Sequence record: NC_019407.1
Strand: one strand, 5' to 3'
DNA length: 64,000 nucleotides
The translations under genes and the position numbers were made by a program. Under the pieces are notes generated by a model that was not told the DNA's origin, searched no databases, and was given only the letters and a program-made list of their open reading frames with translations. Below are positions 2,390 to 52,469 of the stretch, piece after piece (the stretch's first letter is position 1; each line of letters opens with the position of its first letter).

Positions 2390-2404
2390 GTCGTGAATCT
2401 TGAC
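2390..2404 (+). promoter_or_regulatory. GTCGTGAATCTTGAC palindromic operator/-35 element
   Basis: Copy of a 15-mer found in nine intergenic regions. Contains GANTC and TTGAC. Confidence 0.75.
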
Positions 2405-2457
2405 GTTCCTGGATGATCGTGGCATCCAGGGACACCTCCTTTCATGGTTAATGCCCG

Positions 2458-3108
2458 ATGCCGAGCTTCCACGACGTCCTGTTCCCCGAGACCATCAGCT
2501 ACGGCTCGTCCGGCGGCCCGAAGTTCAAGACCACGATCTTCCAGGCCGACAGCGGCTTTGAGCAACGCAACAAGGACTGGAGCGACATCCGCTGCGAGTA
2601 CGATGTCGCCCAGTCGATCCGCTCGACCGAGGACATGGACGAGCTTCGCGCCTTCTTCATGGCCCGCAACGGCCGCGCCCACGGCTTCCGCTACAAGGAC
2701 TGGGGCGATTTTCGCCTCAAGAACCAGTTGATCGGCGTCGGCGACGGCGTCACCAAGGTCTTTCAGATCGTCAAGACCTACACCAGCGTCGCCCACGACG
2801 GCACCGAGTACACCTACACCCGCACGATCCGCAAGCCCAAGTGGGACTCGATCGCCGGCGTCAAGGTCGGCGCCGTGGTTCAGGTCGCCCCGACCAACTA
2901 CGAGGTCGACTATTCGACCGGCCTGATGACCTTTGTCACCGCGCCGCCGGCCGACGCCCCGGTCACCATTGGCCTGGGCGAGTTCCACGTCCCCGTCCGC
3001 TTCGACACCGACTTCATGGACGTCACCCAGGAGTTCTGGATGCGCGAGACGTGGCCCAACATCCCGATCGTCGAAATCCGTGACTGGCAAGAGGCCCTGA
3101 CGCCGTGA
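2458..3108 (+). CDS. GTA-like distal tail protein (DUF2460/TIGR02217 family)
   Basis: FHDVLFP..ISYGSSGGP.F.T, GRAHGFRYKDW and FHVPVRFDTD motifs; position after tape measure. Confidence 0.9.
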   Translation: MPSFHDVLFPETISYGSSGGPKFKTTIFQADSGFEQRNKDWSDIRCEYDVAQSIRSTEDMDELRAFFMARNGRAHGFRYKDWGDFRLKNQLIGVGDGVTKVFQIVKTYTSVAHDGTEYTYTRTIRKPKWDSIAGVKVGAVVQVAPTNYEVDYSTGLMTFVTAPPADAPVTIGLGEFHVPVRFDTDFMDVTQEFWMRETWPNIPIVEIRDWQEALTP

Positions 3109-4730
3109 AATCCGTCCCCGAAGACCTGATGGCGCACCTCCAGGAGGAGGTGACCACGCTCGCGACGTGCATCACGATCGTGCGCCAGGACGGCAAGGCG
3201 TTCTTCATGACCGACCACGACCGGCCGATCAAGTTCGAGAACCAGACCTACGTCCCCTACGACTCCTACCAGCGCACGTCGATCCTGATGTCGTCGGAAC
3301 TGGAAGTCGACACCGCCGACATCACCGCCTTCCTGACCTCGAACGGGGTGACGCGCGACGATGTGGCCTCGGGCCTGTTCGACTACGCCGCGATCAAGGT
3401 CCAGTTGCTGAACTACGAGCGGCCCGAGGACGGGGCGATCCTGCTCCGCAAGGGCACGTTCGGCGAAGTGACCATGAACCAGGACGAGACCTTCTCGGCC
3501 GAAATCCGGGGCATGACCCAGGTCCTGACCTACCGGGTCGGGGAGACCTACGCGCCCGAGTGCCGGGCCGACCTCGGCGACCGCCGCTGCAAGATCGGCC
3601 TGATGCCTGAGGAATGGCAGGCCAACAAATACTACGGCCTCGACGCCTGCGTGCTGGGCGAACTCGTCGCCCCCACGTCGTTCGTCAATCCCGTGGTCGT
3701 CAACGGCAACTTCGAGGACGGCGCGCTCAACGCCGTCGTCACCGCGCCGACGGGCTGGGTGGCCTATGGCGATCCGACCAGCCGCTGGGTCTACAAGCAC
3801 GACTGGTACAATCTGTCGCGCCCGCAGGTCGGCAACCAGTTCATCGCCGCCACCCGCACCTCGATCTCCGACAAGCAGGAAGTCGCCGGCATCTACCAGG
3901 ACATCAACCTCGTCTCCGCCGGCGTGCCGGCCGCCGCGATCGACGGCGGCCTCTGCCGCGTGCGCTACAAGTCCTTCGCCGCCTGCCTCAACAACCGCGC
4001 CCAGTCGCGCGAGCGCCTGACCTGCATCAAGGCCGACGGCTCGGTCGAGACGATCTGGGACACCGGCGAGATCAAGTACCCTGAGGACCGCTGGATCGCG
4101 GTCAACGCCGACGACATCCTGATCCCGGCCGGCACCCGCGTCCTGCGCATCGATCTGTGGTCCAAGAAGCGCAGCGTCCACGAAGAGGGCGCGGCCTATG
4201 ACGGGATCAGCCTGTCGATCAACCTGCCGGCGGGCACGGCCGGCAACGCCCATGTCTATGGCGGGGTGATGTTCAAGTGCATCCAGGCGGGGATCAGCGG
4301 CGGCACCCAGCCGGCCTGGACCAACGAACTGGGCGCCACCTATACCGACGGCACGGTCATCTGGCAATGCGTGACCAACTACAAGAAGGTGGGCACGGTC
4401 GCCACGGTCGCCTCCAACAAGTCGTTCACCTCGACCGACATCACCGAGCCGGCCGGTCACTATGACGGCGGCGTGCTCTACTGGGAAACCGGCCGCAACG
4501 CCGGACGCGCCCAGGAGATCAAGACCTGGGCCGCCAACCTCTTCACGCTCTTCCAGCGCACCTACTATCCGATCACGGCGGGCGACCGCTTCGTGGTCTA
4601 TCCCGGCTGCGACAAGCGCCGCGCCACCTGCGCCGACAAGTTCCACAATATCCACAATTTCCGCGCCGAGCCCGACGTGCCCGGCCAGGACATCTACTAC
4701 CGCACGCCCAACGCTCCGGAGCAGGAATGA
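3105..4730 (+). CDS. GTA-like tail hub protein (DUF2163 plus BR0599-like C-terminus) with internal inserted domain
   Basis: N-terminal TDHDRPI; CRADLGDRRC; C-terminal PGCDKR..TC..KFHNIHNFRAEP. Confidence 0.85.
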   Translation: MKSVPEDLMAHLQEEVTTLATCITIVRQDGKAFFMTDHDRPIKFENQTYVPYDSYQRTSILMSSELEVDTADITAFLTSNGVTRDDVASGLFDYAAIKVQLLNYERPEDGAILLRKGTFGEVTMNQDETFSAEIRGMTQVLTYRVGETYAPECRADLGDRRCKIGLMPEEWQANKYYGLDACVLGELVAPTSFVNPVVVNGNFEDGALNAVVTAPTGWVAYGDPTSRWVYKHDWYNLSRPQVGNQFIAATRTSISDKQEVAGIYQDINLVSAGVPAAAIDGGLCRVRYKSFAACLNNRAQSRERLTCIKADGSVETIWDTGEIKYPEDRWIAVNADDILIPAGTRVLRIDLWSKKRSVHEEGAAYDGISLSINLPAGTAGNAHVYGGVMFKCIQAGISGGTQPAWTNELGATYTDGTVIWQCVTNYKKVGTVATVASNKSFTSTDITEPAGHYDGGVLYWETGRNAGRAQEIKTWAANLFTLFQRTYYPITAGDRFVVYPGCDKRRATCADKFHNIHNFRAEPDVPGQDIYYRTPNAPEQE

Positions 4731-5152
4731 CCCGCGACGACATCGTGACCGAAGCGCGCCGCTATGTCGCGCTCCAAACCCCCTGGCGCCATCGAGGCCG
4801 CACCGAGCGCGGCCTCGACTGCATCGGGCTGGCCGTCATGATCTTCGAGAAGTTCAACCTGGAGTACATGGACCAGGATGGCTACGCGCGCACGCCCGAC
4901 GGCGAGAAGTTCGTCGACGTGATCCGCCAGCACATGACCCTGGCCGATCCGACGGCGCTCAAGCCGGGCATGCTGCTGCTGTTCAACGACGACGCCCGGC
5001 CCTGCCATGTCGGCATCCTGGCGCGCCAGCACGGGCGCCTGACCCTGATCCACGCGACCGCCGACAAGAAGCGGACGGTCGAGGAAGTCTATGACCGCCG
5101 CTATGCCGCCCGGTTCCGCATGGCCTTCGATTTCCCCGGCGTTGAGGACTAA
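4727..5152 (+). CDS. NlpC/P60 family tail-associated peptidase
   Basis: PWRHRGR...GLDCIGL catalytic Cys, HVGI and LIHA His motifs. Confidence 0.92.
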   Translation: MTRDDIVTEARRYVALQTPWRHRGRTERGLDCIGLAVMIFEKFNLEYMDQDGYARTPDGEKFVDVIRQHMTLADPTALKPGMLLLFNDDARPCHVGILARQHGRLTLIHATADKKRTVEEVYDRRYAARFRMAFDFPGVED

Positions 5153-5154
5153 TC

Positions 5155-8100: not shown

Positions 8101-8631
8101 CGGTTCGTGTTCCTCGACGAGCGCTCGATCGAGTTCCAGGCCGAAAACCTCGACACCTCGGGCCAGAACCGTTGGTATAAGGCGGTCGGCTCGGGCATGT
8201 CGCTGTTCGAGACCGATCCGATCCAGATCAACTACCAGCCCCGCGACCTCATGCCCTACCGCCCGGCCGACATCCGTCGGGCGGTCGCGGGCGGCGACGT
8301 CACCGTGACCTGGAAGCGCCGCACGCGCTTCACGGCCACGCTGAAGGATGGCACCGGCGTGGTCAGCCTCAACGAAGGCTCCGAAGCCTACGAGGCCTAT
8401 GTGCTCGCCGCGCCGTACTCGGGGGACTTGTCGCGTCAAGACGCGCCGACCGTCTACCGTCGCAAATACACCCTGACGAGCCCGAGCTTCACCTACACGG
8501 CGGCCGAGCAGACGGCCGACGGATTTGACGTGAATCTTGACACTCTGCACGTGGTGATCTATCAGTTGAGTTCGGTTGTTGGTCGGGGTTTCCCCGGCGC
8601 GCGCTCGATTGAGTCCTGGCAGGACTTCTAA
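5155..8631 (+). CDS. GTA-like central tail tip / host-specificity (megatron-type) protein
   Basis: STYGNVIPEIYGTARVGGNMIW, APAYRGLCYVVF, FGNRIPQ and LLRGRRGT motifs; 1158 aa. Confidence 0.88.
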   Translation: MAAAIALPIVSAIVSTAISYAFPSDGPRLRDTKVSASTYGNVIPEIYGTARVGGNMIWSKPFTEKKKKKRAGKGGSYYNEYTYYCDFAMAFCRGPVKEVRRIWADGKVIYDTTGGSEVIDNNKYRFRFYPGDEAQLPDSLIVEDKGADYAPAYRGLCYVVFDDFALADFGNRIPQIMAEVYAGDEGGAAITDIVPLPSSPVTGGSYQLGQMMIDADRGYFYLVDSVSNPAGTVLRRFLLANGKEDRREIVSIPQAQFPPSVYDSPDLTSVRAVTSKGELLCVFGGINNYMRIEKLDPYSWQSLGTIGRSYPFEGTPENSLEHSNTNFEISRDDKGNYLCLTLGVFGEYNIFDPSDMSFKAKGEMAGWGGPGTPMYICARQGGATASRRFFHVTYTGGASLQVCSLNEVLYNHPLDHPGDSQTATSWAFWDEGDPGVVFFYSDGPNRYIAKWSESTGVLAWKTQLRNSDPFCGYGVYGLRARIKDNEFHWVYNKHLFSINTATGQWIDRTFDQDFYKSDNDKTAEQVNDGDKGLLLPRDISEDYVIYDPRRNIVICIGAIQAQNGIVHVGGYTGGRTSVGAIVERLLVSTGQMTSNDYDLTPLYDIPVYGYGYASSTDIKSIIAELRNLFMFDLVESDGRLVARVRGDQDPDAEVPWKLLGSQGGPTPDKADYWKETRMSESDLPASIDLTYSNIDDDYNPSTAKSKRIASPVATMLSRQQVKAECNLVMDATEAKNRVNIMLYTQWEERTQHQTALPWLYANLDASDLISVTMEDGRNYFERIGSIEFGADFSSRLETYGTDSGAYLSDKTGDGGGAGRPTVVPAPKPVVGFILNTPLLRDTHDSGGNFSNWYSAIGAGAPGVFLGGTMFKSANSQDYVDLYQEPESAEWGTVMGVVPSPSHGWFALDWETRITITPAVDFFELESITDDELWEGLNLVVIGDEVLQFRDAVQNADGTWTIWNLLRGRRGTQYACDNHKAGERFVFLDERSIEFQAENLDTSGQNRWYKAVGSGMSLFETDPIQINYQPRDLMPYRPADIRRAVAGGDVTVTWKRRTRFTATLKDGTGVVSLNEGSEAYEAYVLAAPYSGDLSRQDAPTVYRRKYTLTSPSFTYTAAEQTADGFDVNLDTLHVVIYQLSSVVGRGFPGARSIESWQDF

Positions 8632-15081: not shown

Positions 15082-15086
15082 CGAAT

Positions 15087-15101
15087 GTCGTGAATCTTGA
15101 C
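15087..15101 (+). promoter_or_regulatory. GTCGTGAATCTTGAC element upstream of lysis cassette
   Basis: Exact motif copy in the intergenic gap before the endolysin. Confidence 0.75.
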
Positions 15102-15160
15102 ATCGGCATGTTTCCGGACCATAGTCAAGACCTTGATTTTCAGCACTTCCGGAATTCCAC

Positions 15161-17201: not shown

Positions 17202-17232
17202 CCTTGCGACATAGGGTCGCATGTCATGATCC

Positions 17233-17261
17233 TTGACAGAACGACGATCTTCGAGTATGGT
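17233..17261 (+). promoter_or_regulatory. Sigma70-type promoter
   Basis: TTGACA-17 nt-TATGGT. Confidence 0.75.
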
Positions 17262-17578: not shown

Positions 17579-18379
17579 CTAGTCGACCGCTTCCAGGCGT
17601 CGGCGCTTGGGGGCGCTCGTCGGCATGGACGGGGCCAGATCGCCGATCTTGCCGACCACCTTGCCGAGGAACACGATCCGCTTGGGATCGACGTCGACAT
17701 GATCCTTCAGGTCGGCGCTATAGACCCGGAACGCGCCGCCCTTGGAGGGACGGGTGACGTGCGCGACCTGCATGACCTTGTCCAGGCCGTAGACGAACTC
17801 GCCGCCGGCGGTGCTGGGCTCGACATCGCGGCGGACCACCGCCATGTCGCCCGGCTTGAGGCCAGGGGCGAAGTCGTGGATCGGGGCCAGGGCCAGATCG
17901 GTCGGCTCGGCCTCGAAGCGCTCGCGAAGCCAGTCGGGATCGAGGTTCCAGGTCCGGGCGCGCTTGAACTCGCCAAGGCGGCCTTTGAAGGTCACTTCCT
18001 CGACCGGGTTGGGCGCGCCGACCCCGAAGGTGATGTATTCGGGCGTCGTCTTCAGGACGTGGGCGATCTGCTCCAGCACGTCGATGTGCGGCTTGACGCT
18101 GTCGGACTCGTACATGATGTACGCCGTGCGCGCCAGCGGCCGGCGCTCGCCAGCCTGCTTCGGCTCCCAGCCCGGTTTGGTGCTGGAGTCCTTGCGGGAA
18201 TTGCTCTGCTGGGTCAGGAAGATCATCTTGGCGACCTGTTCCTGAGTCAGGTCGAGGGCCTTCCGGCAGGCGGTGATCCGCTGCCCGATGGTCTGAGGAT
18301 GCGCAAGATCGGCATCCTTGTGGATCAAGGAACGAGCGCGATGGGGCACCATCGGCTTCAGTTCGGCCACGGCTTGCAT
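17579..18379 (-). CDS. XRE-family HTH regulator with degenerate S24-like C-terminal domain (CI-like)
   Basis: IGQRITACRKALDLTQEQVA HTH; C-terminal LKPGDMAVV...FLGKVVG. Confidence 0.8.
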   Translation of the reverse strand: MQAVAELKPMVPHRARSLIHKDADLAHPQTIGQRITACRKALDLTQEQVAKMIFLTQQSNSRKDSSTKPGWEPKQAGERRPLARTAYIMYESDSVKPHIDVLEQIAHVLKTTPEYITFGVGAPNPVEEVTFKGRLGEFKRARTWNLDPDWLRERFEAEPTDLALAPIHDFAPGLKPGDMAVVRRDVEPSTAGGEFVYGLDKVMQVAHVTRPSKGGAFRVYSADLKDHVDVDPKRIVFLGKVVGKIGDLAPSMPTSAPKRRRLEAVD

Positions 18380-18556
18380 TTCGTTCTCCTCCGTCCGTCG
18401 GGAACCGCGTCATTCGGTGTCGGGGTAACACCTGACATTTGCGATGGTTCCACGCCGCAACGTTTCCTTGTCGAAATTGACAAAGAGGGGATGTACACCC
18501 TCTTTGGCAACACATCAAGGCCAGAGATGAAAAAAGTTGTTAACCCGACTTAAGGC

Positions 18557-23552: not shown

Positions 23553-23658
23553 GGGGTCTCGTTCTCGCGTCGAGGCGCGATGCGTTAAAAAGCCCTGAGA
23601 AATCAGGGCCTTAGATTGACAGCAAAGGATGGTTAAGATAGCCTGAGGGGTCCCGAAA

Positions 23659-23673
23659 GTCAAGATTCACGAC
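23659..23673 (-). promoter_or_regulatory. GTCGTGAATCTTGAC element / nrdA promoter
   Basis: Motif followed by TTGACT-17-TATCTT on the minus strand. Confidence 0.78.
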
Positions 23674-23714
23674 ACTCGTGAACCCCTCAAAGATTCCTTG
23701 ACAGCCCCTCGGAT

Positions 23715-24577: not shown

Positions 24578-24615
24578 GCTCGGCTCCGGTGATGTCGTGT
24601 CTCCTGACGATTGAT

Positions 24616-24630
24616 GTCAGGATTCACGAC
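24616..24630 (-). promoter_or_regulatory. GTCGTGAATCCTGAC element (1 mismatch)
   Basis: Intergenic motif copy. Confidence 0.65.
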
Positions 24631-24644
24631 ATCGGTCAACAAGG

Positions 24645-26153: not shown

Positions 26154-27488
26154 CTAGCGAAGGATGGTGAGGGTCTTGGCCGCGCGGGTGATGCCCGTGT
26201 AGAGCCACTTGTCTTCGTCGGCCCGGAAGCAGCCGCTTTCGTCGATCAGGACGACATCGTCCCACTGCGAACCCTGGCTGGCATGGCAGGTGATGGCGTA
26301 GGCCCAGTCCGCGACGATCGAGCTTTTCAGCGCCCGCCAAGCCTTCTGCTCAGGCGCGGTGTAGCCCTTGTTGGTGCGCGAGAAGTGCTCCTCGAACATC
26401 CCCTGGAACATCGTCTTGTCGTGGTACTCGACGCCGTTCTCGTCGCTGAACGAGCCCTGGAACGTCGCGTCGCCATGGGTGAACTCGACCGACTTGAGCG
26501 AGGTCACTTCCGTGCCGTTGGTCAGGTCCGGGTTGTCGCGGACGTTCTTGCGGATGATCAGCGGCTCGTTCTTCTGCGGCCCCACGCGCTCGCCAGGGTA
26601 CTCGACGTAGCCGAATTCCGAGCGAAGCTGCTGGTTGACGTTCCACCGGGTCTTGTTGCGGCCGACGATGAACTGCGGGCGGTCCTCGAAATCGAAGACC
26701 TCCTCATATTCGGCGCGGCGCATGACCTTCACCCCGCTGCCGTAGTCGCGGAACGGCAGGTCCTTGCCTTCGCGCGCCAGGGTCGACAGGTGGATGATCG
26801 GATTGTCCTGGGCCTGCCGGTGGATTTCCGACAGGAAGAAGTCCGGATCATTGGCCAGCAGGCCCGCGTCGTCCTCGACCGGCGGAAGCTGACCAGGATC
26901 GCCCATGGCGAAGATCGGCACCCCGTATTCCATGAGGTCGTCGGTCATCCGGCGCCCGACCATGGACGCCTCGTCGACGACGATCAGGCTCGCCAACTGG
27001 ATGGCGCTGTCGGGGTTCAGTTGGAAGTTGATCTTGTCCTCGCGGTAGGCCGCGCTGAGTTCGGCCTCCAGGCGCTTGATCAGCTTCTTTTGCGTGAAGA
27101 TGTGCTGGTCCTTGTCCGGATCGCCGCCTTCCATGGCGCAGATGTAGAGCGCTTCGCTGAGCGCTTCCCGGTGGTTTTCCAGGTCGGTTTCGAGTTGTGA
27201 GATCGGGGCCGGCTTGGCGCGGTAGATCGCCGAATGGATCGTGCCCGCGTTGGTGTTGGCGTAGCCCTGGGCCTTCAGCTTGGTCCGCATGACCTTGGCG
27301 GCCTTGCCCGTCGGGGCGACGAAGGCCACGGTCTCGGGTGCGATGCCGAGGCTGTCGAGAATGAACGGCAGGATGGTGGACTTGCCCGAGCCGGCGAAGC
27401 CGGTCATCGTCGTCAGGGGTTGCCCGTCCTTGATCTTTTCGACAACGACCTTGCGGGCCGTGTCCTGTTGTGCGCTGAGCGTAGTCAT
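26154..27488 (-). CDS. RecD/Dda-like SF1B helicase
   Basis: GFAGSGKS, APTGKAA, DEASMV, GDPGQLPPV, ITCHASQGSQW and YTGITRA motifs. Confidence 0.92.
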   Translation of the reverse strand: MTTLSAQQDTARKVVVEKIKDGQPLTTMTGFAGSGKSTILPFILDSLGIAPETVAFVAPTGKAAKVMRTKLKAQGYANTNAGTIHSAIYRAKPAPISQLETDLENHREALSEALYICAMEGGDPDKDQHIFTQKKLIKRLEAELSAAYREDKINFQLNPDSAIQLASLIVVDEASMVGRRMTDDLMEYGVPIFAMGDPGQLPPVEDDAGLLANDPDFFLSEIHRQAQDNPIIHLSTLAREGKDLPFRDYGSGVKVMRRAEYEEVFDFEDRPQFIVGRNKTRWNVNQQLRSEFGYVEYPGERVGPQKNEPLIIRKNVRDNPDLTNGTEVTSLKSVEFTHGDATFQGSFSDENGVEYHDKTMFQGMFEEHFSRTNKGYTAPEQKAWRALKSSIVADWAYAITCHASQGSQWDDVVLIDESGCFRADEDKWLYTGITRAAKTLTILR

Positions 27489-27561
27489 CGGAGACTTTCG
27501 GACGAGACGAGGGAACCCGCCCGGACGCGCCGGGCGGGTTGGTCGAAGGGATCAGGAGCGC

Positions 27562-30680: not shown

Positions 30681-30728
30681 CGGGCGATCTCGTTCGGGAG
30701 TGTCTTGTTAACCAAGTTCCGGATGGGT

Positions 30729-30743
30729 GTCAAGATTCACGAC
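30729..30743 (-). promoter_or_regulatory. GTCGTGAATCTTGAC element
   Basis: Exact intergenic motif copy. Confidence 0.75.
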
Positions 30744-30751
30744 ATAGAAAG

Positions 30752-31426
30752 TCACGAAGCACGACTCACGCCCTGGGCTTTGATGATCTCGTAGATACGC
30801 TGGGCCGACAGGCTGTAGGCCTCGGCCAGTTGCGCCACCGGCTCGCCCTTGGCGTAGCAGTCGGCGATCTCGGCGTAGAACCGCTTCTTGGCCTCCTCCC
30901 GGCGCAGCTTGGCGTCGGGGGCGTGGCGGTCGATGAAGCGGTAGATCGCGATCCGGCTGACCCCGTAGTCCTTGGCGATCAAGGGCACGGGGGCGAAGGC
31001 GGCGTAGCTTTCGATGATGTCGGCGGCGTGGTCGGCGAGGGCCATGGGGTTCTCCAGGAGGGCGAGAGCGCGGTCGATCACCACCGCCGCGCGCTTCGAG
31101 GGCTGTTTGGTCAGGAAGCCGCAGCGGCGGCCGGCGGCGTAGGGCGGCTCCAGCCCTACGCAGAGGTACTGGTCGGCGGTCGGGTCCGCGCGGTAGCCGC
31201 CGGCGGCCTCAAGCCACCAGTGGGTCCCGCCGTCGGGGTCGCGCCCGACCATCGGCCGCCAGCCGCCGTCCCAACCGTCCAGCAGATGCCAGAGCGCCTC
31301 GGAGGCGACATAGCAGTGCCCGGCGGTCGGGTTGGAAGCCGTGTACGCGGAACGATAGGGCTCGTGCAGAAGCTCGGGTGTGAGGCTCTTCTGGACCGCG
31401 ATAAGGGTTTCGAGCGGCGCCTGCAT
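30752..31426 (-). CDS. Hypothetical protein with two C-terminal HTH-like repeats
   Basis: ATG overlaps the polA stop; IAKDYGVSRIAIYR and LAEAYSLSAQRIYEI. Confidence 0.75.
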   Translation of the reverse strand: MQAPLETLIAVQKSLTPELLHEPYRSAYTASNPTAGHCYVASEALWHLLDGWDGGWRPMVGRDPDGGTHWWLEAAGGYRADPTADQYLCVGLEPPYAAGRRCGFLTKQPSKRAAVVIDRALALLENPMALADHAADIIESYAAFAPVPLIAKDYGVSRIAIYRFIDRHAPDAKLRREEAKKRFYAEIADCYAKGEPVAQLAEAYSLSAQRIYEIIKAQGVSRAS

Positions 31427-33672: not shown

Positions 33673-34717
33673 GGAGCACCTTGAGGATTTGATCGCCGAT
33701 CCAGTCCACCATCGGGACGATCAGGCTGTTGCCGACGATGGTCCGGCGCTCGGTGTCCGAGAGCCCTTCGATCGCGGTGTGGCCGACGGGCATGCCCATC
33801 AGGCGCTCGTACTCGGACACGGTGTGATTGCGGATGCGCCAGTCCTCGCCTTCCTTGACGAGCAGCATGGCGACGCTGGAGCCGCCGCCGGCCGTGCGCA
33901 GGCAGTTGGCGATTACGCCGCGCTCTTCGATTTGCTGGTCGGGGCGTCCGCGAACAGCGAGGGATCGAGCCCGTGGGACAGGGCGGCCGTCAATTCCGGC
34001 GACAAGGTCCGACCGGCTCGGATCGCGTTGTTCAGGAGGGTCAAACGCCGGGACGGGCTCATGTACAATCCGGCGGGGATCGATTCCGGAGCGTCGAGTA
34101 CACGCGACAAGCACAAGCCGGGGGCGGGACTGGGGGATTCCGAACTGGGGACCGTCGAAGACCGTCCAGGCGATCGCGCGGCGCGGTCCCAGCACATAAC
34201 CACAGTCCGGCCACCGATTCCCTGCCGCGTCGTCGTCACCTTCGGGCTTTCCGTAGGGGTAGAGGGGTTCTCGCTCGCCGGCGAGGCGTCCGAGGAATTG
34301 TCCAAAGGCGTTGTCCTTGTTGGAGAGGAGCTTGACCACGTTCTCGAAGCAGAAGATCGGAGGATCGACCTCGTCGATCACCCGCAGGCCCGAAAGGGTC
34401 AGTTGTCCGCGCGGGTCGGCCAGACCCAGGCCCTTGCCGGCCTCGCTCCACGGCTGGCAGGGGAACGACGCCCACAGGACGTCGACCTTGCCCTCGTGAG
34501 GCGTGCCGTCGATCTGTTCGAGGTTCCCGAGGTTCGGGACGGCCTTCCAGTGCGTCTCCAGGAGACGGATCGGGGCCGAGGCGATCTCGCTGAAGAAGCG
34601 GGCCTTGCCGCCCTTCTTCTCCCACGCCACCGAGGGGACGTCGGCGCCGGAGCAAAGGGTCGCAAAGACCCACGGCGTGACGCCGGAGGCGTCCGCAGGG
34701 GAGGGGTTCGGGGACAT
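33659..34717 (-). CDS. C5-cytosine DNA methyltransferase
   Basis: Variant motif I (LCSGAD), FPCQPWS, FENV, PQSRPR and GNS motifs. Confidence 0.88.
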   Translation of the reverse strand: MSPNPSPADASGVTPWVFATLCSGADVPSVAWEKKGGKARFFSEIASAPIRLLETHWKAVPNLGNLEQIDGTPHEGKVDVLWASFPCQPWSEAGKGLGLADPRGQLTLSGLRVIDEVDPPIFCFENVVKLLSNKDNAFGQFLGRLAGEREPLYPYGKPEGDDDAAGNRWPDCGYVLGPRRAIAWTVFDGPQFGIPQSRPRLVLVACTRRSGIDPRRIVHEPVPAFDPPEQRDPSRSDLVAGIDGRPVPRARSLAVRGRPDQQIEERGVIANCLRTAGGGSSVAMLLVKEGEDWRIRNHTVSEYERLMGMPVGHTAIEGLSDTERRTIVGNSLIVPMVDWIGDQILKVLHEAP

Positions 34718-34772
34718 GGCTCTATGGTTAACGGATGTCGTGAATCACGTCAAGAAATGTCGTCAACGACGA

Positions 34773-35571: not shown

Positions 35572-37275
35572 TTACAGGCGCCAGTGGCGGCCGTTGAAGG
35601 TGATCAGCGCCCGCTTGCCGTTCGGGTACTGCACGCAGTGGGTGTGCGCCCAGGACGAGGGGCCGGTGTTGTAGCCCATGTCCAGCTTCGAGGTTGTGCC
35701 CGTGTTGTAGGCGCTCTCGAAAATGCCGGGCGAGTGGGTGTGGCCGAACGTCACCTTCGGGCCGATCTTGGCGAACTGCTGGATGTTGCCGCGCGAGCCG
35801 TTGGCGCCGTTGTGGCCGTGGTTGGAGTGCTCGACCCCGCCGACGACGCAGGTCTCGTCCTCGCGCAGGAACTTCACGCCGTTGCAGTTCCAGACGTCGA
35901 AGGCGTTGGTCATCACCTCCTCGAAGATCGAGAAGTTCTTCTCGCCGGTCCGGATCGAGGCGTAGACCGCCCGCTGACAGGTGAGGAAGAACTCGGCATT
36001 GACCGGGTCGGCGCGGTAGTCGGCCGTCTTCAGCCACTTGTTGAGCGCCAGATCGTGGTTGCTCTCAACCACCGTGACCTTCGAGTCCGGGGCCTGCCGG
36101 CCCAGGATGGTCAGGAACATCGCCACCTCGCGCAGTTCCTGCTCGACGCTTTCGGAGCCCTTGACATAGAGCCGGAAGCGATCGTGCGGATCGGCGATGT
36201 TGTGGTGGTTGCGCGCCCGGAAGTCGGAGACGTCGTGGACGAAGATGTGCTCGGGCCGCAGGACGTCGATCATCGACGGCGTCGCCACGCTGCCCCACAC
36301 CCGGCTCCCGTCGGCCGAGCGCTGCTCGGTCGGGAAGAAGCCGAAAGTGGCGGCCGAGACCTCGGGATCGATCTGCGCCACGTGGACGTCGCCGGGCGTC
36401 AGGCAGGCCACGCGATGGCCCTCGGTGACCACGCCGTCCTTGACGAAGACGTCCAGGTCGTAGAACGAGCCGTCGGTATCGCCCAGCAGGTGGCGACAGA
36501 AGAACTTGCCGTCCTCGTCGACCTCGACCAGCACCGCGCCCAACTGGTGGTGGAAGCTGGCCTTGATCCCCGCCTTCTTGGGGACGTAGTTCGGCTTGGT
36601 GACCGCGCCCGTCGTCATGATCTGCTTGGACGGGGTGTGCTTCATCGTCGGAACGCTGACGAGTTGCACCTTGGCGTGGGGGAAGATGCCCCAGCGCTCG
36701 CGGGTGTAGGAGTGGAAGCCCGACAGCGGGTTCTCGGCCGTGGGGAGGGTGTTCATCTCGCCGCAGAAGTCGATCCGGTCGGCGATCCGCACGCGCTCGG
36801 CGACGAGGTATTCCATCACCCGCTTGTGGAAGAACGCCGCGTGCTTGGCGTGGTCCTCGAACAGGCGCTTGGAGTAGGTGAAGCCGGCGATCATGATCTC
36901 GCACGGCGCGTCCCGGCGCAGGTGCTCGGCATAGGCCTCCAGATTGTCGACGAACTCCTCGTGGATGTGCGTCGAGTCCTGGGCCGAGGACAGGATGAAC
37001 CGCCGGCGCCCGGTGGTCTCATCCACCGTCACGGTCCGGGCGGCGGGCGCCGGCCGGTGCGACAGCGGGTCCTTGCGCATCGAGTAGAGGCGGTTCTGGA
37101 GCGTCGTGCGCTTGACGCTGTACTTGCGCGAGAACGCCCGCTGGCCGCCGGCCTTCTTGACCATCGCGTTCAGTTCTTCCGGCGACACCGAATAGATGTC
37201 GAACGGACCCTCGGCCGGCAAGGCGGTCTTGGGCTTCTTGCCCGCCTTGGAAGCGTGTTCGAACTCAGCCGGCAT
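35572..37275 (-). CDS. Calcineurin-like metallophosphoesterase with N-terminal HTH-like region
   Basis: GDVH, HDVSD, SNHD, HGH and GHTH metal-binding motifs in order. Confidence 0.75.
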   Translation of the reverse strand: MPAEFEHASKAGKKPKTALPAEGPFDIYSVSPEELNAMVKKAGGQRAFSRKYSVKRTTLQNRLYSMRKDPLSHRPAPAARTVTVDETTGRRRFILSSAQDSTHIHEEFVDNLEAYAEHLRRDAPCEIMIAGFTYSKRLFEDHAKHAAFFHKRVMEYLVAERVRIADRIDFCGEMNTLPTAENPLSGFHSYTRERWGIFPHAKVQLVSVPTMKHTPSKQIMTTGAVTKPNYVPKKAGIKASFHHQLGAVLVEVDEDGKFFCRHLLGDTDGSFYDLDVFVKDGVVTEGHRVACLTPGDVHVAQIDPEVSAATFGFFPTEQRSADGSRVWGSVATPSMIDVLRPEHIFVHDVSDFRARNHHNIADPHDRFRLYVKGSESVEQELREVAMFLTILGRQAPDSKVTVVESNHDLALNKWLKTADYRADPVNAEFFLTCQRAVYASIRTGEKNFSIFEEVMTNAFDVWNCNGVKFLREDETCVVGGVEHSNHGHNGANGSRGNIQQFAKIGPKVTFGHTHSPGIFESAYNTGTTSKLDMGYNTGPSSWAHTHCVQYPNGKRALITFNGRHWRL

Positions 37276-37966
37276 AGAGAAGCTCCGGTTTGGCGCTGAC
37301 CGGCTTGGACCAATCCCAGACGTACCAAGCATAGGCGAAGCGCGGGGCGCCCTTGGTGCCGGCGATCCAGCGGGGGCGGTGACGAAGGGTGACCTTCGCG
37401 GTGAAGGCGGGGTGATCGAACAGGTCCGCGCGCGAGCGCGCCGCGTCCCATTCGTGGCGGCAGAGGAAGGCCACGAGGCCCTGGTCGGCCTCCATCAGGT
37501 CCAGCGCGTGGCGCGCGGCGCGCTCGGCGTCCTTGCCGTAGGGCGGGTTGGTGATGATCGCGTCCGGGCGCGGCGGCAGCGGCGTGTTCTTGCGCTCCTC
37601 GCCTTTCTCGTCGACAACCGTCTCGGGGCGGGCCTTCAGCGCGCCCAGGCGGTCGAGGTCGGCCGGTGTCAGCTTGAAGAAGTCCTCGACCGCGTCGACC
37701 TCGAAGCCCTCGTAGCGGTGGATGTCCGTGGCGAGGACCTCCTGCACGAAGGGCTTGAGCGGCGTGGCGATGGCGCCGTTGCCGGCGAAGGGCTCCCAGG
37801 CGAAGAACGGGGCGAAGTCGTCGCCCAGGGCCTCGATCAGGGCGTCGAAGGCCGGCCGAGGAGTCGGGTAAAAGTCCAGCGGGGTCCTGGCATATCCGGA
37901 GGCGCCCAGCATGGAGGGGTCTTTGCGACCAGCATCGGAGAGAGACATGGTCGTGAGGGATGTCAT
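37265..37966 (-). CDS. Amino (N6-adenine/N4-cytosine) DNA methyltransferase-like protein
   Basis: DFYPTP, WEPFAGNG and ITNPPY motifs. Confidence 0.85.
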   Translation of the reverse strand: MTSLTTMSLSDAGRKDPSMLGASGYARTPLDFYPTPRPAFDALIEALGDDFAPFFAWEPFAGNGAIATPLKPFVQEVLATDIHRYEGFEVDAVEDFFKLTPADLDRLGALKARPETVVDEKGEERKNTPLPPRPDAIITNPPYGKDAERAARHALDLMEADQGLVAFLCRHEWDAARSRADLFDHPAFTAKVTLRHRPRWIAGTKGAPRFAYAWYVWDWSKPVSAKPELLYAG

Positions 37967-37980
37967 GGTTAACGAAGGGT

Positions 37981-37995
37981 GTCAAGATTCACGAC
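37981..37995 (-). promoter_or_regulatory. GTCGTGAATCTTGAC element
   Basis: Exact copy, back-to-back with the ncRNA promoter. Confidence 0.75.
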
Positions 37996-37996
37996 A

Positions 37997-39004: not shown

Positions 39005-39878
39005 TTCCGATGGGCTGAGACTACACCCATCAGCAATCCCGCTTCGAGGATTATTCCCCAGGTGCGACCCCAGGTATTCCCTCGACGTCCACCAGACCCC
39101 TTGCGGTAGTCCAGTCCGAGATCATCGCCGCCGTTCTTGCGCACCCCGAAGGGATTGCGGGTCTGGCGTTTGACCCATCATGGCGAACTACTCGACAGTT
39201 CCTTCCCCGCTGGGCTTGCGACCCACTCACCGGCGCTAACCGGCTGACGAAGCTCTTCCTATCGACACCTCGCGGGCTTGCGACCCTTGAGATGACTCCG
39301 TTACCCGAAGGCCGGAGCATTTGGCGACTTACGTCCGCCACTGGACCAGTCTTTGCGTTTTTCATCGAAGCGGGGATTGAACCCGCGACCGACAGCTTAA
39401 GAGGCTGTTGCACTACCACTGTGCTATTCGCAAACCCACCAAGACGTGCTGGTCCAGTTGTTCCCAGAGCTTTTGACCCCAGAAATGCAACACGCCTCAT
39501 ATCTTTCGCCTTGCGGGCTACTCGACTGCTCTTCAGGACCCCGTCTCCCCCAACCTTTCGGCCAGGATGCCCAGCACCCCTCGAACTGAAGCAAAGCTCT
39601 TCACCGCGAAGTGTCGAACCCTGCAACCCAAACGGTTATCCGTACTCCCTAGACGCGCTTGCACGGGATAGTCCGCTTGCGACGGACTGGCGGTTAAAGC
39701 CTCGGAGTTACCCCGGCCCCGCCTTGTCTCCCACGGTCTTCAGGTCTATCCCCTTTTGCAAGAGGCGGCCAGCTTCCCAGCCCGGACCCGTCGGCTTCCT
39801 CTGTCCTCTTGCGAGGTCGGGCGGCCTATGGGAGACCGTCCCTGTCACCCCGTCGCCGGGGCTTTCGTCAGAAGCGAC
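39005..39878 (-). ncRNA. GOLLD-like giant structured RNA (~870 nt)
   Basis: Promoter and terminator bounded; at least 8 GNRA and 2 UUCG hairpins; GTCGAGTAG twice, one in a loop-E-like AGUA/GAA context; internal tRNA module; next to phage tRNAs. Family call is from recalled GOLLD features, not a search. Confidence 0.72.
39362..39433 (-). tRNA. tRNA-Lys(CTT)-like module embedded in the GOLLD-like RNA; degenerate acceptor stem, no CCA
   Basis: D arm GCAC/GTGC, ACAGC-CTCTTAA-GCTGT, GCGGG-TTCAATC-CCCGC; only about 4-5 acceptor pairs. Confidence 0.8.
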
Positions 39879-39913: not shown

Positions 39914-39969
39914 CGACTTTTTCCGTCTCGATGTCGAATTTTTTCGACAGTCGTGGATGACGACAGTGC

Positions 39970-39998
39970 TTGACATTCTCGTAAGCCCATGCTAGGTG
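39970..39998 (+). promoter_or_regulatory. Sigma73-type promoter of the tmRNA/tRNA unit (divergent)
   Basis: TTGACA-15 nt-GCTAGGT. Confidence 0.72.
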
Positions 39999-40003
39999 TC
40001 GGA

Positions 40004-40375
40004 AATCGTTGTAATTCGGACAACGGAACTGGCGGCAAGACAGGGGTGCGAATCCCCTCGCCTCCACCATCGACGCCCGGCGCTGGGAGTACGCGACTCC
40101 TGGGCAGGGTGCGTTACCCTGGCGGGCTGCGGCCCGAGCCAAGGGGTAGCCGGGCGTCGTTGATGGGGGCGACTAGCTTTCGATTGGCGCTCGGGACTGA
40201 AAGACGCAACGGTGGGTGACCTCCACATCGGCTTGCCGGTGATCGGGTCAGGCAACAGTAAATGTCGCCGACAATGACAACGACGTCGTGGCTTTCGCCT
40301 CGGCTCGTGAAGCCATCGCCGCCTAATAAGCGGTAGAGGAGCCCGCCGGGAGCTTGGCAACAGAATCCCGGCAAC
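40004..40375 (+). ncRNA. ssrA: Two-piece (circularly permuted) alphaproteobacterial-type tmRNA
   Basis: Acceptor piece ends GAC-AGGGG-TGCGAAT-CCCCT-CGCCTCC-A-CCA (40069). Intervening segment closed by CGACGCCCGGC/GCCGGGCGTCG. Coding piece starts GGGGGCG (40165), giving G3:U70. Tag 40267-40326 reads ADNDNDVVAFASAREAIAA with tandem TAA. Confidence 0.93.
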
Positions 40376-40507
40376 CCCCTTTCGCAGGCGGGAACACCAA
40401 CAGGCGATCTGTCGGGCGACCGATTTCCGATCCGTGTTCCCGTCTTCGAAAGGTGGTCGGGCCTACCCTCTTGGTGTGCTATCCAAGGGTCTGGCCACTT
40501 TACAGAA

Positions 40508-43953: not shown

Positions 43954-44004
43954 GGGCGCCGCACGTGGTTAACGCGCGGAATGTCGCCCATCACGACACT
44001 AGAT

Positions 44005-44019
44005 GTCAAGATTCATGAC
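44005..44019 (-). promoter_or_regulatory. GTCATGAATCTTGAC element in a divergent promoter region
   Basis: Motif copy with a neighbouring TTAACCAT. Confidence 0.75.
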
Positions 44020-44091
44020 TTGACCCAAGGCGTTAACCATGTCACGTTCGCCGCACGGCCGAGAGATCGGCCGGTCACAAGGAGAACTATC

Positions 44092-49941: not shown

Positions 49942-50034
49942 GGCAAACTCCGAAAGGCAGGCTTGAGTGAATGTGTTGCCGATCCTTCTAGCGAGGCGTT
50001 CTGGCTCTGTCAACACACTCCAGCCTACCGGGAT

Positions 50035-50049
50035 GTCGTGAATCTTGAC
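50035..50049 (+). promoter_or_regulatory. GTCGTGAATCTTGAC element in a divergent promoter region
   Basis: Exact copy. Confidence 0.75.
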
Positions 50050-50068
50050 GTTCCGCGACGCCTGAGGC

Positions 50069-50667: not shown

Positions 50668-51038
50668 GCAGCGATCTGCCCCTCTACGATGGCGCGCTGA
50701 CGGGCAAGCTCGTCGGCCGCTTCGTGCGCGCCGGGCAGGCCTTCGACGTCGTGCGTCCTGGCTTCGACGCCCAGGGGATCAAGCGCCAGACCTGGACCCA
50801 GATCGTCCATGGCGGCGTTCCCGTCTTCGAGGTCAAGGTCCGCACCGATCTCGACAATGTGATCGACCGCTTCGACGAACTGTGGGAGCGTCACATCGGC
50901 GAGGACGAGGACCTGCTCGCCCGCGCCCTGGCCTCGGTCAAGAAGGAGCGGACCGCCAAGTTCCGGGATGGCAAGTCGGGGGTCACGCCGGCCCCGACCG
51001 TCCACGACGTCCGCATCCCCACCGCCTATAGCGGTTGA
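50664..51038 (+). CDS. Hypothetical protein
   Basis: TTGA start/stop overlap; high GC3. Confidence 0.7.
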   Translation: MSSDLPLYDGALTGKLVGRFVRAGQAFDVVRPGFDAQGIKRQTWTQIVHGGVPVFEVKVRTDLDNVIDRFDELWERHIGEDEDLLARALASVKKERTAKFRDGKSGVTPAPTVHDVRIPTAYSG

Positions 51039-51117
51039 CATTTTGTTGGCGTTCAAGGGTTGACAGCCCGGATTTCATGACTTAGATGCCTCCTCGACGA
51101 CAACGAAGGAGGCTCTC

Positions 51118-51744: not shown

Positions 51745-51753
51745 GAGGGCGCG

Positions 51754-52167
51754 ATGACCTATGTCTGCACCACCGAGACCGACGAGATCATCAACGCCCA
51801 GCCCGTCGATCTGGACGCGGCCGAGGCCCTGCTGCGTCCGCGTCCGAACTTCGCCAAGGCCAGGGGCGTCTGCCGCGAGTGCGGCGCGCCCAAGAACGAA
51901 CGGCGCCTGGGTGCGGACTTCTGCTCGACTCGCTGCCGCTCGGACTTCCACAACCGGGCCAAGATCGAGGGCGCGTCGCTGATCCACATCGTCAAGCGCT
52001 GGCGGCGCTATCGTCGCCCTGGCGACTTCGCCCTGATGACCAAGATGGCGGACGACCTGATCCGCGCCGACAAGCTCGCCAACCGCAACTTCTATCCCGA
52101 CCCGCCGGCCACGGCTCACGCCAAGGTCGTCGCCACCAACATCGCCGGGCGCCGCAAGGCCCGCTAG
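51754..52167 (+). CDS. Hypothetical zinc-finger protein
   Basis: CREC...FCSTRC; GGAGG RBS. Confidence 0.75.
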   Translation: MTYVCTTETDEIINAQPVDLDAAEALLRPRPNFAKARGVCRECGAPKNERRLGADFCSTRCRSDFHNRAKIEGASLIHIVKRWRRYRRPGDFALMTKMADDLIRADKLANRNFYPDPPATAHAKVVATNIAGRRKAR

Positions 52168-52182
52168 TCCCAGGAGTACAGT

Positions 52183-52437
52183 TTGACCACACCGAACCAA
52201 GCCCCCGTCCACACCGTCGAGAGCGGTGGTCACCTCTTCCAGGTCTATGCGGCCCCGGAGAACCACACCCACCGCTACCTCGGCTATTGCGACGGAACGA
52301 TCAGCGTCAGCGGCTCCAGCGTTGACGTCGTCCTGCGGGCCTTGGTGACTAAACATCCGGCGGTGCGGCCCAGCGGCGAGGTGATCGATTTCACCGCCTA
52401 TCGCCTCAAACGCCTGGGCGAGGAGTTCGCCGCCTGA
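52183..52437 (+). CDS. Hypothetical protein
   Basis: GGAG RBS, TTG start. Confidence 0.65.
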   Translation: MTTPNQAPVHTVESGGHLFQVYAAPENHTHRYLGYCDGTISVSGSSVDVVLRALVTKHPAVRPSGEVIDFTAYRLKRLGEEFAA

Positions 52438-52454
52438 CGTCGTGATTTAACACT

Positions 52455-52469
52455 GTCATGAATCTTGAC
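52455..52469 (+). promoter_or_regulatory. GTCATGAATCTTGAC element / primase promoter
   Basis: Followed by TTGACA-16-GCTAGA. Confidence 0.78.

Follow-up and report, generated by a model that had tools for sequence, protein, structure and literature searches.

The window analysed here, 64,000 nucleotides at its full length, represents bases 62001-126000 of Caulobacter phage CcrMagneto, a phiCbK-like phage. An earlier note on this DNA reported nine copies of the block GTC(G/A)TGAATC(T/C)TGAC, and all of them were recovered where it had placed them: on the plus strand at 2390, 15087, 50035 and 52455, and on the minus strand at 23659, 24616, 30729, 37981 and 44005. These are 9 of 9 exact pattern matches, and dinucleotide-preserving shuffles gave none. 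A further copy with one mismatch, at 8527, had been overlooked, and weaker variants lie at 17223 (centre GATCC, without GANTC) and 62051. The 15-bp block is present as described, but the column counts extend conservation by two bases upstream and by an A after TTGAC. In the whole Magneto genome, 25 copies lie within three mismatches of the 17-mer, versus 0.1 in shuffles. We found no description of this motif in the searchable literature.

On sequence and position alone, the 17-mer appears to form the core of one promoter class, which we call class M. In this class, a sigma-70-type -35 hexamer is directly preceded by a lineage-specific arm. The relevant features of the window are the following.

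2389..2405, plus strand: class M 17-mer, exact match, upstream of gp093, the first gene past the tape-measure gene
8526..8542, plus strand: class M 17-mer with one mismatch, within the gp096 3' end, upstream of gp097
15086..15102, plus strand: class M 17-mer upstream of the endolysin gene gp101, with a -10-like hexamer 17 bp downstream
17222..17261, plus strand: variant 17-mer (GATCC centre, no GANTC) with a good -10, antisense into the gp106 3' end
17579..18379, minus strand: gp106, with an HTH_3 domain and a CI/LexA-like C-terminal domain; candidate dyad reader
23658..23674, minus strand: class M 17-mer upstream of nrdA (gp109)
24594..24631, minus strand: feature with the class M 17-mer at 24615-24631, upstream of gp112
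30728..30765, minus strand: feature with the class M 17-mer at 30728-30744, upstream of the exonuclease gene gp119
34736..34752, no strand assigned: most symmetric dyad, 7 of 8 pairs, upstream of gp122
37980..37996, minus strand: class M 17-mer upstream of the DNA methylase gene gp125 (whose product has an NPPY-type motif) and the T5 A1-like gene gp124
44004..44020, minus strand: class M 17-mer upstream of the helicase gene gp129
50034..50050, plus strand: class M 17-mer in the divergent region between rIIA (gp136) and gp138-140
52454..52470, plus strand: class M 17-mer, 7 of 8 dyad pairs, upstream of gp144 (primase/polymerase-like protein, 1218 aa)
62050..62066, plus strand: weak variant with three mismatches, orientation different from that of the local genes; membership uncertain

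The orientation of the downstream gene is matched by all nine exact copies in the window and by 18 of 18 copies in the first genome-wide census, and in both sets (9 and 18) the next gene lies 50-190 bp downstream. Most copies are intergenic, as the earlier note stated for all of them; the exceptions are the copy at 50035, inside the 45-codon ORF gp137, and the one at 8527, within a CDS. Copies number 21-25 in the Magneto genome; about 21 are clear ones, 12 of them within the window. They are restricted to 18-125 kb and 203.7 kb of the Magneto genome, i.e. to the structural, lysis, replication and packaging modules, and the genome-wide census gave no copies in the terminal repeat and the two small-gene arms.

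Promoter architecture and dyad symmetry

The overlap of the motif with -35 boxes at real gene starts, proposed from the window, is borne out; each copy includes an invariant -35 hexamer close to TTGACA, of the type used by sigma-70 and, in Caulobacter, by sigma-73. Its column counts, out of 21 clear copies in Magneto, are T 19, T 21, G 21, A 21, C 21 and A 16. With a 17-bp spacer, the putative -10 element has A at position 2 in 13 of 18 copies and T at position 6 in 12 of 18. A generic sigma-70 scan calls just two of the nine exact window sites (15086..15102 is one of them) because most -10 regions are weak. The variant promoter at 17222..17261 has 10 of 12 consensus matches, and its position is kept in BL10 and at loci L174 and L176.

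A second promoter type, class E, fills the 113-192 kb arms of small genes. Its upstream element is of another kind and its leader is conserved, and its hexamer is invariant too. The mean -10 match (to the hexamer used by the tool) is 3.9/6 in class E versus 2.9/6 in class M (Mann-Whitney P = 3.5e-5). From the positions of its copies, class M would serve the operons for tail, lysis, nucleotide metabolism/replication and packaging. In the published time course, replication genes are early and structural and lysis genes come later (PMC10688885); both groups share the motif, therefore the motif alone does not set timing.

The arm, an A/T-rich centre and the hexamer together make an imperfect 17-bp dyad with its centre near -38. 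At class M promoters, 5-7 of 8 arm pairs are complementary and few sites are truly symmetric, so that the dyad character of the proposed near-perfect inverted repeat is real while its near-perfection is not. The site at 34737, formerly taken for a half copy, is in fact the most symmetric one, with a second left-type arm replacing TTGAC; on the gene strand, it lies within the spacer of a TTGAC-type promoter that precedes the C5-methyltransferase gene gp122 and the DNA polymerase gene. Extra arm copies close to class M promoters number 12 versus 5 expected. A second, inverted arm-bearing copy (24594-24608) covers the -10/start region of the gp112 promoter, an additional arm copy (30751-30765) is located immediately upstream of the gp119 17-mer, and an inverted one lies 5 bp upstream of the site at 37980..37996.

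Arm switching between lineages and the candidate reader

In BL10 (83-85% nucleotide identity), all eight orthologous sites have the core unchanged, and one further site stands ahead of a BL10-specific gene. Colossus (CcrColossus) is a phage of the same host; there, hexamer and spacing are retained at 13 of 13 orthologous promoters, and the arm is of another type throughout. Sites orthologous to 2389..2405 and 8526..8542 are present in both phages. The symmetric site that precedes the C5-methyltransferase gene has 7 of 8 pairs in Magneto/BL10 and as many in Colossus, and in each case the lineage's own arm type stands on both sides. Colossus has six symmetric sites within two mismatches of the pattern formed by its arm and the arm's reverse complement, about 0.07 being expected by chance according to our own arithmetic estimate. 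Two more lineages show further arm types, and at the tail-tube promoter, compared among 38 relatives, the hexamer is kept together with a short A/T-rich stretch that ends in TC just before it, and the bases farther upstream are lineage-specific.

In the sequences compared, this co-variation reads as a clear sign that the operator arm and a phage-encoded reader have evolved together. The arm swaps at the 13 orthologous Colossus sites and the switch of both arms at the symmetric site would indicate a dimeric reader encoded by the phage and not a host protein. Because Magneto and Colossus are separated by one deep split, phylogeny confounds any match between arm changes and one particular protein; the pattern nevertheless narrows the search to a handful of phage proteins.

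The best candidate for the predicted dyad-reading protein is gp106. It matches Pfam HTH_3 and PHROG_4 (“transcriptional repressor”), and its AlphaFold2 model (mean pLDDT 82) has its best PDB matches in the phage 186 CI repressor, LexA, the lambda cI C-terminal domain and the P22 c2 N-terminal domain, with Foldseek E-values of 5e-8 to 5e-7 for the 186 CI chains and 5.5e-6 to 1.1e-5 for Thermotoga maritima LexA. The gene is conserved in relatives; the Colossus homolog has 40% identity, and the divergence is greatest around the HTH region. The C-terminal domain has no conserved Ser/Lys self-cleavage pair. The gp106 promoter itself resembles class E, and there is no arm copy upstream of gp106 in Magneto, hence no sign of autoregulation. 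By distribution, gp147, TgrL/gp223 and the A1-like gp124, other DNA-binding proteins common to Colossus, fit equally well. Of the two readers named in the earlier note, the dimeric phage HTH protein is the most economical, and the gene it had pointed to (17579-18379) has the CI/LexA-type predicted fold; GcrA, its alternative, is not supported.

We suggest as the probable interpretation that the class M core includes a dyad operator for a phage-encoded dimeric regulator, with gp106 as the best candidate. The arm would be one strong half-site, and the weaker half-site would double as the -35 hexamer, bringing the regulator and sigma region 4 together on one stretch of DNA. Repression through competition with sigma for the hexamer seems favoured, and the accessory arm copies that cover spacer and -10 at several promoters may aid it; the opposite direction, activation by sigma contact as with lambda CI at PRM, is the alternative. 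GANTC would then be the inner part of the two half-sites, not a conserved requirement.

GcrA, methylation and CtrA as possible inputs

The earlier note had connected the motif with CcrM methylation and GcrA. Of the 22 clear Magneto copies, 20 have GANTC, and the host has a CcrM/GcrA system (PMC4647560), which speaks for host CcrM methylating the central GANTC and host GcrA reading the site, so that the promoters switch with the cell cycle. However, reverse-complementing the heptamer of 19 of 21 copies gives the GcrA variant ranked 32nd of 32, the low-affinity control for GcrA occupancy in PMC4647560. GcrA elements are concentrated at -20, -30 and +5 to +30, with linker length given as the reason why they are absent farther upstream, and GcrA works as a monomer (PMC9976885). 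In class M, GANTC directly precedes the hexamer, with its centre near -38, outside the reported GcrA positions (the exception is the symmetric site at 34736, itself located in a spacer), and a monomer does not suit a co-varying dyad. An earlier survey of phiCbK-like phages gave no positional signal for GcrA sites (PMC9437464). A host reader also predicts an identical site in every phage of this host, yet Colossus changes the arm and has GANTC at 8 of its approximately 20-22 sites (about 40%), and in two further lineages GANTC occurs at 1 of 3-4 sites. We regard control by host GcrA as highly improbable, and the methylation reading of the earlier note as weak.

A phage version of the same idea is that gp229, the Magneto GcrA homolog encoded outside the window, serves the host's main sigma factor as a cofactor, reads the GAATC centre with or without the arm and recruits host RNA polymerase to class M, perhaps in a manner dependent on adenine methylation. 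It is attractive in that GANTC is fixed only in the clade carrying a phage GcrA homolog: homologs are restricted to the phiCbK, Rogue, BL10 and BL57 groups, the GTCGTG-type arm with invariant GANTC belongs to the same clade (Magneto, BL10 and the Rogue tail-tube promoter were checked), and Colossus, with its lower share of GANTC, has no homolog. The protein matches Pfam GcrA (5e-25) and PDB GcrA chains including the sigma-interacting domain, which is well kept, although its NCBIfam equivalog score of 83 bits is below the cut-off of 280. Its gene is the second in an early class E arm, and the weak class M -10 regions would fit GcrA help, since host GcrA aids open-complex formation via the domain of sigma that binds the -10 element (PMC4647560). 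Host residues R33, N34, I37, G38, H41 and R42 are K, S, C, G, D and R in gp229; thus 4 of 6 base-contacting residues are changed, the S and D substitutions being common to all four phage homologs, and a new specificity is conceivable. However, 3 of 4 methyl-pocket residues are also substituted, the site centre remains beyond the reported positions, a monomer cannot explain two co-varying arms, and the co-occurrence within a clade amounts to a single phylogenetic event. Moreover, Colossus and two other lineages share the architecture and the co-varying dyad without any GcrA homolog; they need a different reader, and the most parsimonious assumption is a reader of like kind in Magneto. We consider control by gp229 unlikely.

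One can also suppose that there is no dedicated regulator: class M would be a strong promoter of the sigma-70 type, its -35 extended or accompanied by a proximal UP-like element, and the shared arm would reflect one promoter cassette spreading within each genome. Indeed, the A/T-rich run ending in TC before the hexamer is found family-wide whatever the arm and may be an intrinsic promoter feature, and the invariant hexamer recurs in the class E promoters of the same phage. Nevertheless, neutral hitch-hiking cannot hold 8-10 arm positions identical across about 20 copies, and again in BL10. The accessory arm copies and the symmetric sites lacking a co-directional hexamer, with both arms co-varying, are left unexplained, and Magneto and Colossus share the host polymerase, yet none of the 13 orthologous sites has the same arm in both. 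This makes the absence of a regulator very unlikely, and the operator of a phage-encoded dimeric regulator remains our preferred reading.

With respect to the cell cycle, the coupling proposed earlier is plausible through CtrA-type half-site words at the promoters and not through GANTC methylation. The count covers the six-letter half-site word only. Magneto has 24 such words outside the terminal repeat, 14 of which fall between -35 and +60 at class M promoters (P = 2e-22); for Colossus the figures are 15 of 37 (P = 1e-21). Most of them lie between the spacer and the start site. CtrA binds and regulates the terminal-repeat promoters of phiCbK (PMC9437464), and in a published survey the full predicted CtrA sites are mostly in the terminal repeat. 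In the host, a half-site over the spacer/-10/start region accompanies CtrA repression (PMC4287350). The words in class M spacers may represent a separate, host-derived cell-cycle input, and on sequence grounds a link through CtrA half-sites is better supported than one through GANTC methylation.

More speculatively, and with little probability in our estimation, the approximately 20 operators, gp106 and the CtrA half-sites may act together as a genome-wide brake on replication, morphogenesis and lysis, serving as the effector of lytic deferment. In the swarmer cell, host CtrA and the phage repressor would hold class M promoters closed, release would come at the swarmer-to-stalked transition, and the class M-like promoter antisense into gp106 would make it irreversible; in the phiCbK/Rogue/BL10 clade, fixed GANTC together with the phage GcrA homolog would bring in methylation or S phase as a further input. 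If it exists, such a brake would supply the effector that “lytic deferment”, as proposed for phiCbK-like phages, has lacked; the CtrA half-sites at class M promoters connect with that published idea. These phages are standard tools of Caulobacter cell-cycle research, and their transcriptional programme has no described promoter code. The proposed map, with one class for the small early-gene arms and an operator-bearing class for replication, tail, lysis and packaging, is checkable against existing RNA-seq data.

Comparison with known systems

Class M resembles GcrA/CcrM promoters in having GANTC in a sigma-70-type promoter and a GcrA-family protein encoded by the phage, but it differs in its lowest-ranked flanks, its position outside the GcrA windows, its dyad as opposed to a monomer reader and the loss of GANTC in relatives. 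With CtrA half-motif promoters, it shares TTAA-containing words over the spacer, -10 or start region; the class M words are, by sequence, apparently single half-sites rather than TTAA-N7-TTAA and lie outside the terminal repeat.

The stoperators of cluster A mycobacteriophages, read by a single phage repressor (gp71 in L5), are tens of copies of one short site spread genome-wide in short intergenic gaps, transcription-oriented and lineage-variable, and one of them overlaps the -35 region of an early promoter. They are asymmetric, mostly not promoters, and halt elongation. Class M copies are likewise numerous, transcription-oriented and lineage-variable, but nearly every one has a full -35 hexamer and a -10-like element 17 bp downstream.

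The middle and late promoters of phage Mu are not known to have a good -35. As described in PMC4390567, Mor/C is a phage dimer on a 16-bp dyad just upstream of or over the -35 region at middle and late promoters used by host sigma-70 polymerase. The Mu dyad is centred at -43.5, whereas that of class M is near -38 and has a perfect -35 hexamer; no Mor/C-like protein was identified for class M.

The CI repressors of lambda, P22 and 186 are similar in that gp106, by its predicted fold, is a phage protein with an HTH and an oligomerisation domain. Their operators are dyads of 14-18 bp at PR/PRM, and the class M dyad of about 17 bp, A/T-centred, adjoins or covers the -35 hexamer, a position that could give repression or sigma-contact activation. 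The differences are that in class M the -35 hexamer replaces one half-site, that gp106 is without a conserved Ser/Lys self-cleavage pair, and that about 20 operators are distributed across the 219-kb genome of a phage regarded as virulent instead of being gathered in one immunity region.

Promoter block and promoter classes of Magneto

The window matches bases 62001–126000 (plus strand) of CcrMagneto (JX100812.1), a phiCbK-like siphophage of 219 kb, with 100% identity. Its annotated genes form three blocks:

Annotated gene blocks of the window
Window start, + strand: end of the tape-measure gene, tail genes, and lysis cassette
Long block, − strand: from gp106 (HTH protein) through nucleotide-metabolism and replication genes to rIIA/rIIB
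Block beginning near 50 kb, + strand

The 15-bp palindromic pattern described in the earlier note indeed recurs here: nine exact copies are present in the window versus none expected, and each is co-oriented with the next gene. Once mismatches are allowed, an extra copy appears at 8527 (inside gp096 near its 3′ end, ahead of gp097), accompanied by weaker variants at 17223 and 62051. The conserved block exceeds 15 bp and represents a 17-mer (e.g., window 15086–15102), which includes an upstream arm, an A/T-rich centre, and a −35 hexamer, forming an imperfect dyad with 5–7 complementary pairs out of 8. Among 21 clear copies in the whole genome, the columns are near-invariant, and common alternatives are restricted to arm position 5 (G in 14, A in 7), the centre (A in 19, T in 2), and the first hexamer base (T in 19, C in 2). 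The complete Magneto genome has 25 copies at three or fewer mismatches versus 0.1 in shuffles. This census was taken from whole-genome sequences, replacing an exact-pattern scan of IMG/VR, which returned mostly single chance matches plus phiCbK-like contigs with multiple matches. An RNA-level function of the motif was rejected, given the non-significant fold of the motif itself (z = −0.17) and the lack of Rfam families overlapping it.

The block ends on the right in a perfect sigma-70-type −35 hexamer, followed, 17 bases after the block, by a −10-like hexamer (A at position 2 in 13/18 and T at position 6 in 12/18 promoters), while start codons are located 50–190 bp downstream. These promoters, referred to here as class M, precede the following genes:

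Class M promoters
Portal gene, head genes, tRNA cluster, tail tube gene, tail genes, endolysin
nrdA, exonuclease/polymerase, methylase/A1-like, helicase, primase-like gp144
Terminase operon

In the whole Magneto genome, both the terminal repeat and the two long small-gene arms (113–203 kb) are free of class M copies. These arms are served by a second class, E, represented by at least 17 copies (Magneto 113–192 kb; L005 and L006), which shares the hexamer of class M but differs in its upstream element, in its better −10 region, and in a conserved leader word located a short distance ahead of the ribosome-binding site. One copy is located in the window:

51035–51095 (near 51060), + strand: class E promoter

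The match to the −10 hexamer of the prediction tool is lower in class M than in class E (2.9/6 versus 3.9/6, P = 3.5e-5), and a generic promoter scan detects only two of the nine exact class M sites. The TgrL gene (Magneto gp223), which was experimentally shown to be early (PMC10688885), sits in a class E arm. Since replication genes are early, whereas structural and lysis genes are middle to late (PMC10688885), class M does not correspond to one simple temporal class.

Several features were observed around these promoters. The leaders at 52471–52528 (+) and 2406–2457 (+), each following a class M promoter, have a much stronger fold than their shuffled controls (z = −5.6 and −2.8, respectively). 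A strongly A/T-rich island of ~300 bp (L006 about 27180–27500; Magneto about 203.2–203.5 kb), in a genome of 65% G+C, lies within a 700-bp gap just upstream of the terminase operon class M promoter. In addition, the window contains RNA genes, and at the GOLLD locus GenBank annotates tRNAs only:

RNA genes and adjacent elements
39012–39498, − strand: full-length GOLLD RNA (Rfam RF02032; 169 bits versus a gathering score of 150, E = 8e-46)
39361–39434: tRNA-Lys nested inside the GOLLD RNA
39002–38965: 17-pair terminator-like hairpin after the GOLLD RNA
39949–39965: symmetric Magneto-type arm pair, centre not GANTC, preceding the tmRNA promoter
39977–40417, + strand: unannotated permuted (two-piece type) tmRNA gene (Rfam RF04321, 70 bits), tag peptide ending in AIAA (ARAGORN), with a TTGAC-type promoter just upstream

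Variation of the arm among related phages

In CcrBL10 (83–85% nucleotide identity), all eight orthologous sites are present and their core is unchanged. This phage also has an additional class M copy (L170:42270–42300, in the BL10 genome) immediately after a terminator hairpin; this copy precedes a 2.5-kb BL10-specific gene absent from Magneto, so new genes appear to join this promoter class.

A different situation is seen in CcrColossus, which infects the same host as Magneto and has about 40–65% protein identity to it. Its whole genome contains about 20–24 promoters of the same build and in the same places, which carry a different upstream arm. The arm is switched at 13/13 orthologous Magneto/Colossus promoters, whereas the −35 hexamer and its spacing are retained along with parts of the −10 region. 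Two further lineages, identified via gp106 homologs, have other arm types. At the tail-tube promoter, compared in 38 relatives, the hexamer is kept together with the short A/T-rich run before it, which ends in TC, and the sequence farther upstream is lineage-specific. Phages of the same host are expected to share the elements read by host proteins, which is indeed the case for the −35 hexamer and the CtrA-type words. The arm, altered jointly at all copies of a genome and differing between genomes, behaves as expected of a cis element in co-evolution with its reader, which would thus be phage-encoded.

The symmetric sites provide a further indication of how the arm may be read. The site upstream of the C5-methyltransferase gene is more symmetric (7/8 pairs) in both Magneto and Colossus, and in each phage both of its arms match the lineage’s own type. 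In the window, this is the site at 34737, regarded in the earlier note as a half copy; on the gene strand, its dyad is located within the spacer of a TTGAC-type promoter. A count with two 17-letter patterns, each composed of an observed arm and its reverse complement, gave six such symmetric sites in Colossus at two or fewer mismatches. That both arms vary together at symmetric sites suggests a dimeric reader.

Candidate readers and direction of control

The earlier proposal that host GcrA reads GANTC at these sites disagrees with the published properties of this protein in heptamer rank, position, and monomer state. The heptamer at class M sites is the reverse complement of the GcrA variant ranked last of 32, which represents the low-affinity control in the published work. 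GcrA elements occur at −20, −30, or +5 to +30, their absence farther upstream being ascribed to linker length, and the protein binds DNA as a monomer. Moreover, GANTC is present in 8 of about 20–22 Colossus sites and in 1 of 3–4 sites in the two other lineages, which makes it dispensable for the promoter architecture. It is also unlikely, in our opinion, that the centre is read by the GcrA homolog encoded by the phage outside the window (gp229, L005:35670–36218), perhaps with an altered specificity. Such homologs are limited to the phiCbK, Rogue, BL10, and BL57 groups, where GANTC is fixed; 4/6 of the base- or methyl-contacting residues differ from host GcrA, so that a changed specificity is possible, and two of these substitutions are common to all four phage homologs compared, with the sigma-binding domain kept. 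However, the co-occurrence of the homolog and GANTC represents a single phylogenetic event.

The number of GANTC sites (290 observed versus 655 expected from base composition) was rejected as a specific signal because other palindromes of the same composition are equally depleted. In the gp125 product (37265–37912, −), annotated as “DNA methylase”, a glycine-rich motif precedes an NPPY-type one, an order typical of gamma-class amino-methyltransferases and not of CcrM. This product gave no match in Pfam, NCBIfam, or PDB and a “DNA methyltransferase” match in PHROG; its operon, preceded by a class M promoter, also holds a T5 A1-like gene.

The HTH gene gp106, suggested as a reader in the earlier note, is still the best candidate. 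The elements at this locus are as follows:

17579–18379, − strand: gp106
18505–18545, − strand: upstream class E-like element with TTGCCA replacing the usual hexamer
17222–17261, + strand: class M-like promoter with a good −10 and no GANTC, antisense into the gp106 3′ end

The gp106 protein has an HTH_3 domain and matches PHROG_4 (“transcriptional repressor”). Its AlphaFold2 model, built from 13 homologs (mean pLDDT 82), has its best PDB matches with the phage 186 CI repressor, LexA, and the lambda cI C-terminal domain, as well as with the DNA-binding domains of P22 c2 and 434. A conserved Ser/Lys pair is not apparent in its C-terminal domain, a feature closer to 186 CI than to the self-cleaving repressors. 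The family is small (14 clusters among 5.8 billion proteins), and its named members belong to phiCbK-like Caulobacter phages. The Colossus homolog has 40% identity, with the greatest difference in and after the HTH, where a 15-residue segment is limited to the Magneto/BL10 type. On the basis of the model and these comparisons, gp106 may be considered the leading candidate reader of the dyad; alternative candidates are gp147, TgrL/gp223, and the A1-like gp124, DNA-binding proteins common to Magneto and Colossus.

Autoregulation of gp106 has no support, as no arm copies occur upstream of this gene in Magneto. A CtrA-type word is located about 30 bp farther upstream of its class E-like element, and the Colossus homolog is preceded by a similar element. 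The antisense promoter occupies a conserved position in BL10 as well as in two distant lineages (L174 near 11157, L176 near 11219). In Colossus-type phages, an RNA polymerase alpha C-terminal-domain-like region occurs in Colossus gp133 (L128:3619–4473) and in L174:13298–14134, just upstream of the endolysin gene; Magneto gp100, at the same position as Colossus gp133, has no Pfam match.

The dyad extends from about −46 to −30, and its promoter-proximal half is the −35 hexamer. This half departs from the arm’s mirror image at two positions in the Magneto and Colossus lineages; in Magneto, both departing bases are the first two of the hexamer. Extra arm copies cover the spacer/−10 region at several promoters (24594–24608, and downstream of 44005 and 37981). 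The overlap of the dyad with the hexamer, together with these extra copies, would favour repression, in which a regulator on the dyad would compete with sigma; the alternative is an activation similar to that by lambda CI at PRM. Inverted arm copies upstream of the 17-mer are present at 4/18 promoters and hence represent an accessory, not a defining, feature.

CtrA-type words and the place among known systems

CtrA sites in the terminal repeat of phiCbK-like phages are documented, and a repeat containing TTAACCAT overlaps predicted CtrA sites (PMC9437464). The word used here is a short consensus with indirect support only, from the TTAA half motif and the TTAACAT form (PMC4287350) and from this repeat. 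The unique Magneto genome contains 42 occurrences of this six-letter half-site word, 18 of them in the terminal repeat. Outside the repeat, 14/24 words fall in the −35 to +60 interval around class M promoters (P = 2e-22), and the same holds for 15/37 words in Colossus (P = 1e-21). Beyond the terminal repeat and class M promoters the word is rare, being absent from Magneto 110–200 kb. The majority are in the spacer or start region, and several are conserved at orthologous promoters (portal, methylase, exonuclease, C5-methyltransferase, and others).

CtrA-type words in the window (among others)
2440–2447
23628–23635
30698–30704
34708–34715
37958–37966
43965–43972
44047–44055

When CtrA half motifs cover the −10 region of host promoters, they accompany repression (PMC4287350). 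The predicted half-sites at class M promoters fit the published idea of lytic deferment.

Gill et al. (2012) described no promoter motif, Mascolo et al. (2022; PMC9437464) dealt with the CtrA sites of the terminal repeats and saw no positional preference of GcrA sites, and McLaughlin et al. (2023; PMC10688885) gave temporal classes and not promoters. A search for the motif strings returned unrelated primer sequences only, and phiCbK promoters are undescribed in the non-subscription literature covered. Within this literature, there is no earlier description of the motif, of either promoter class, or of the arm co-variation, while a phage regulator with operators at promoters represents a well-known kind of system.
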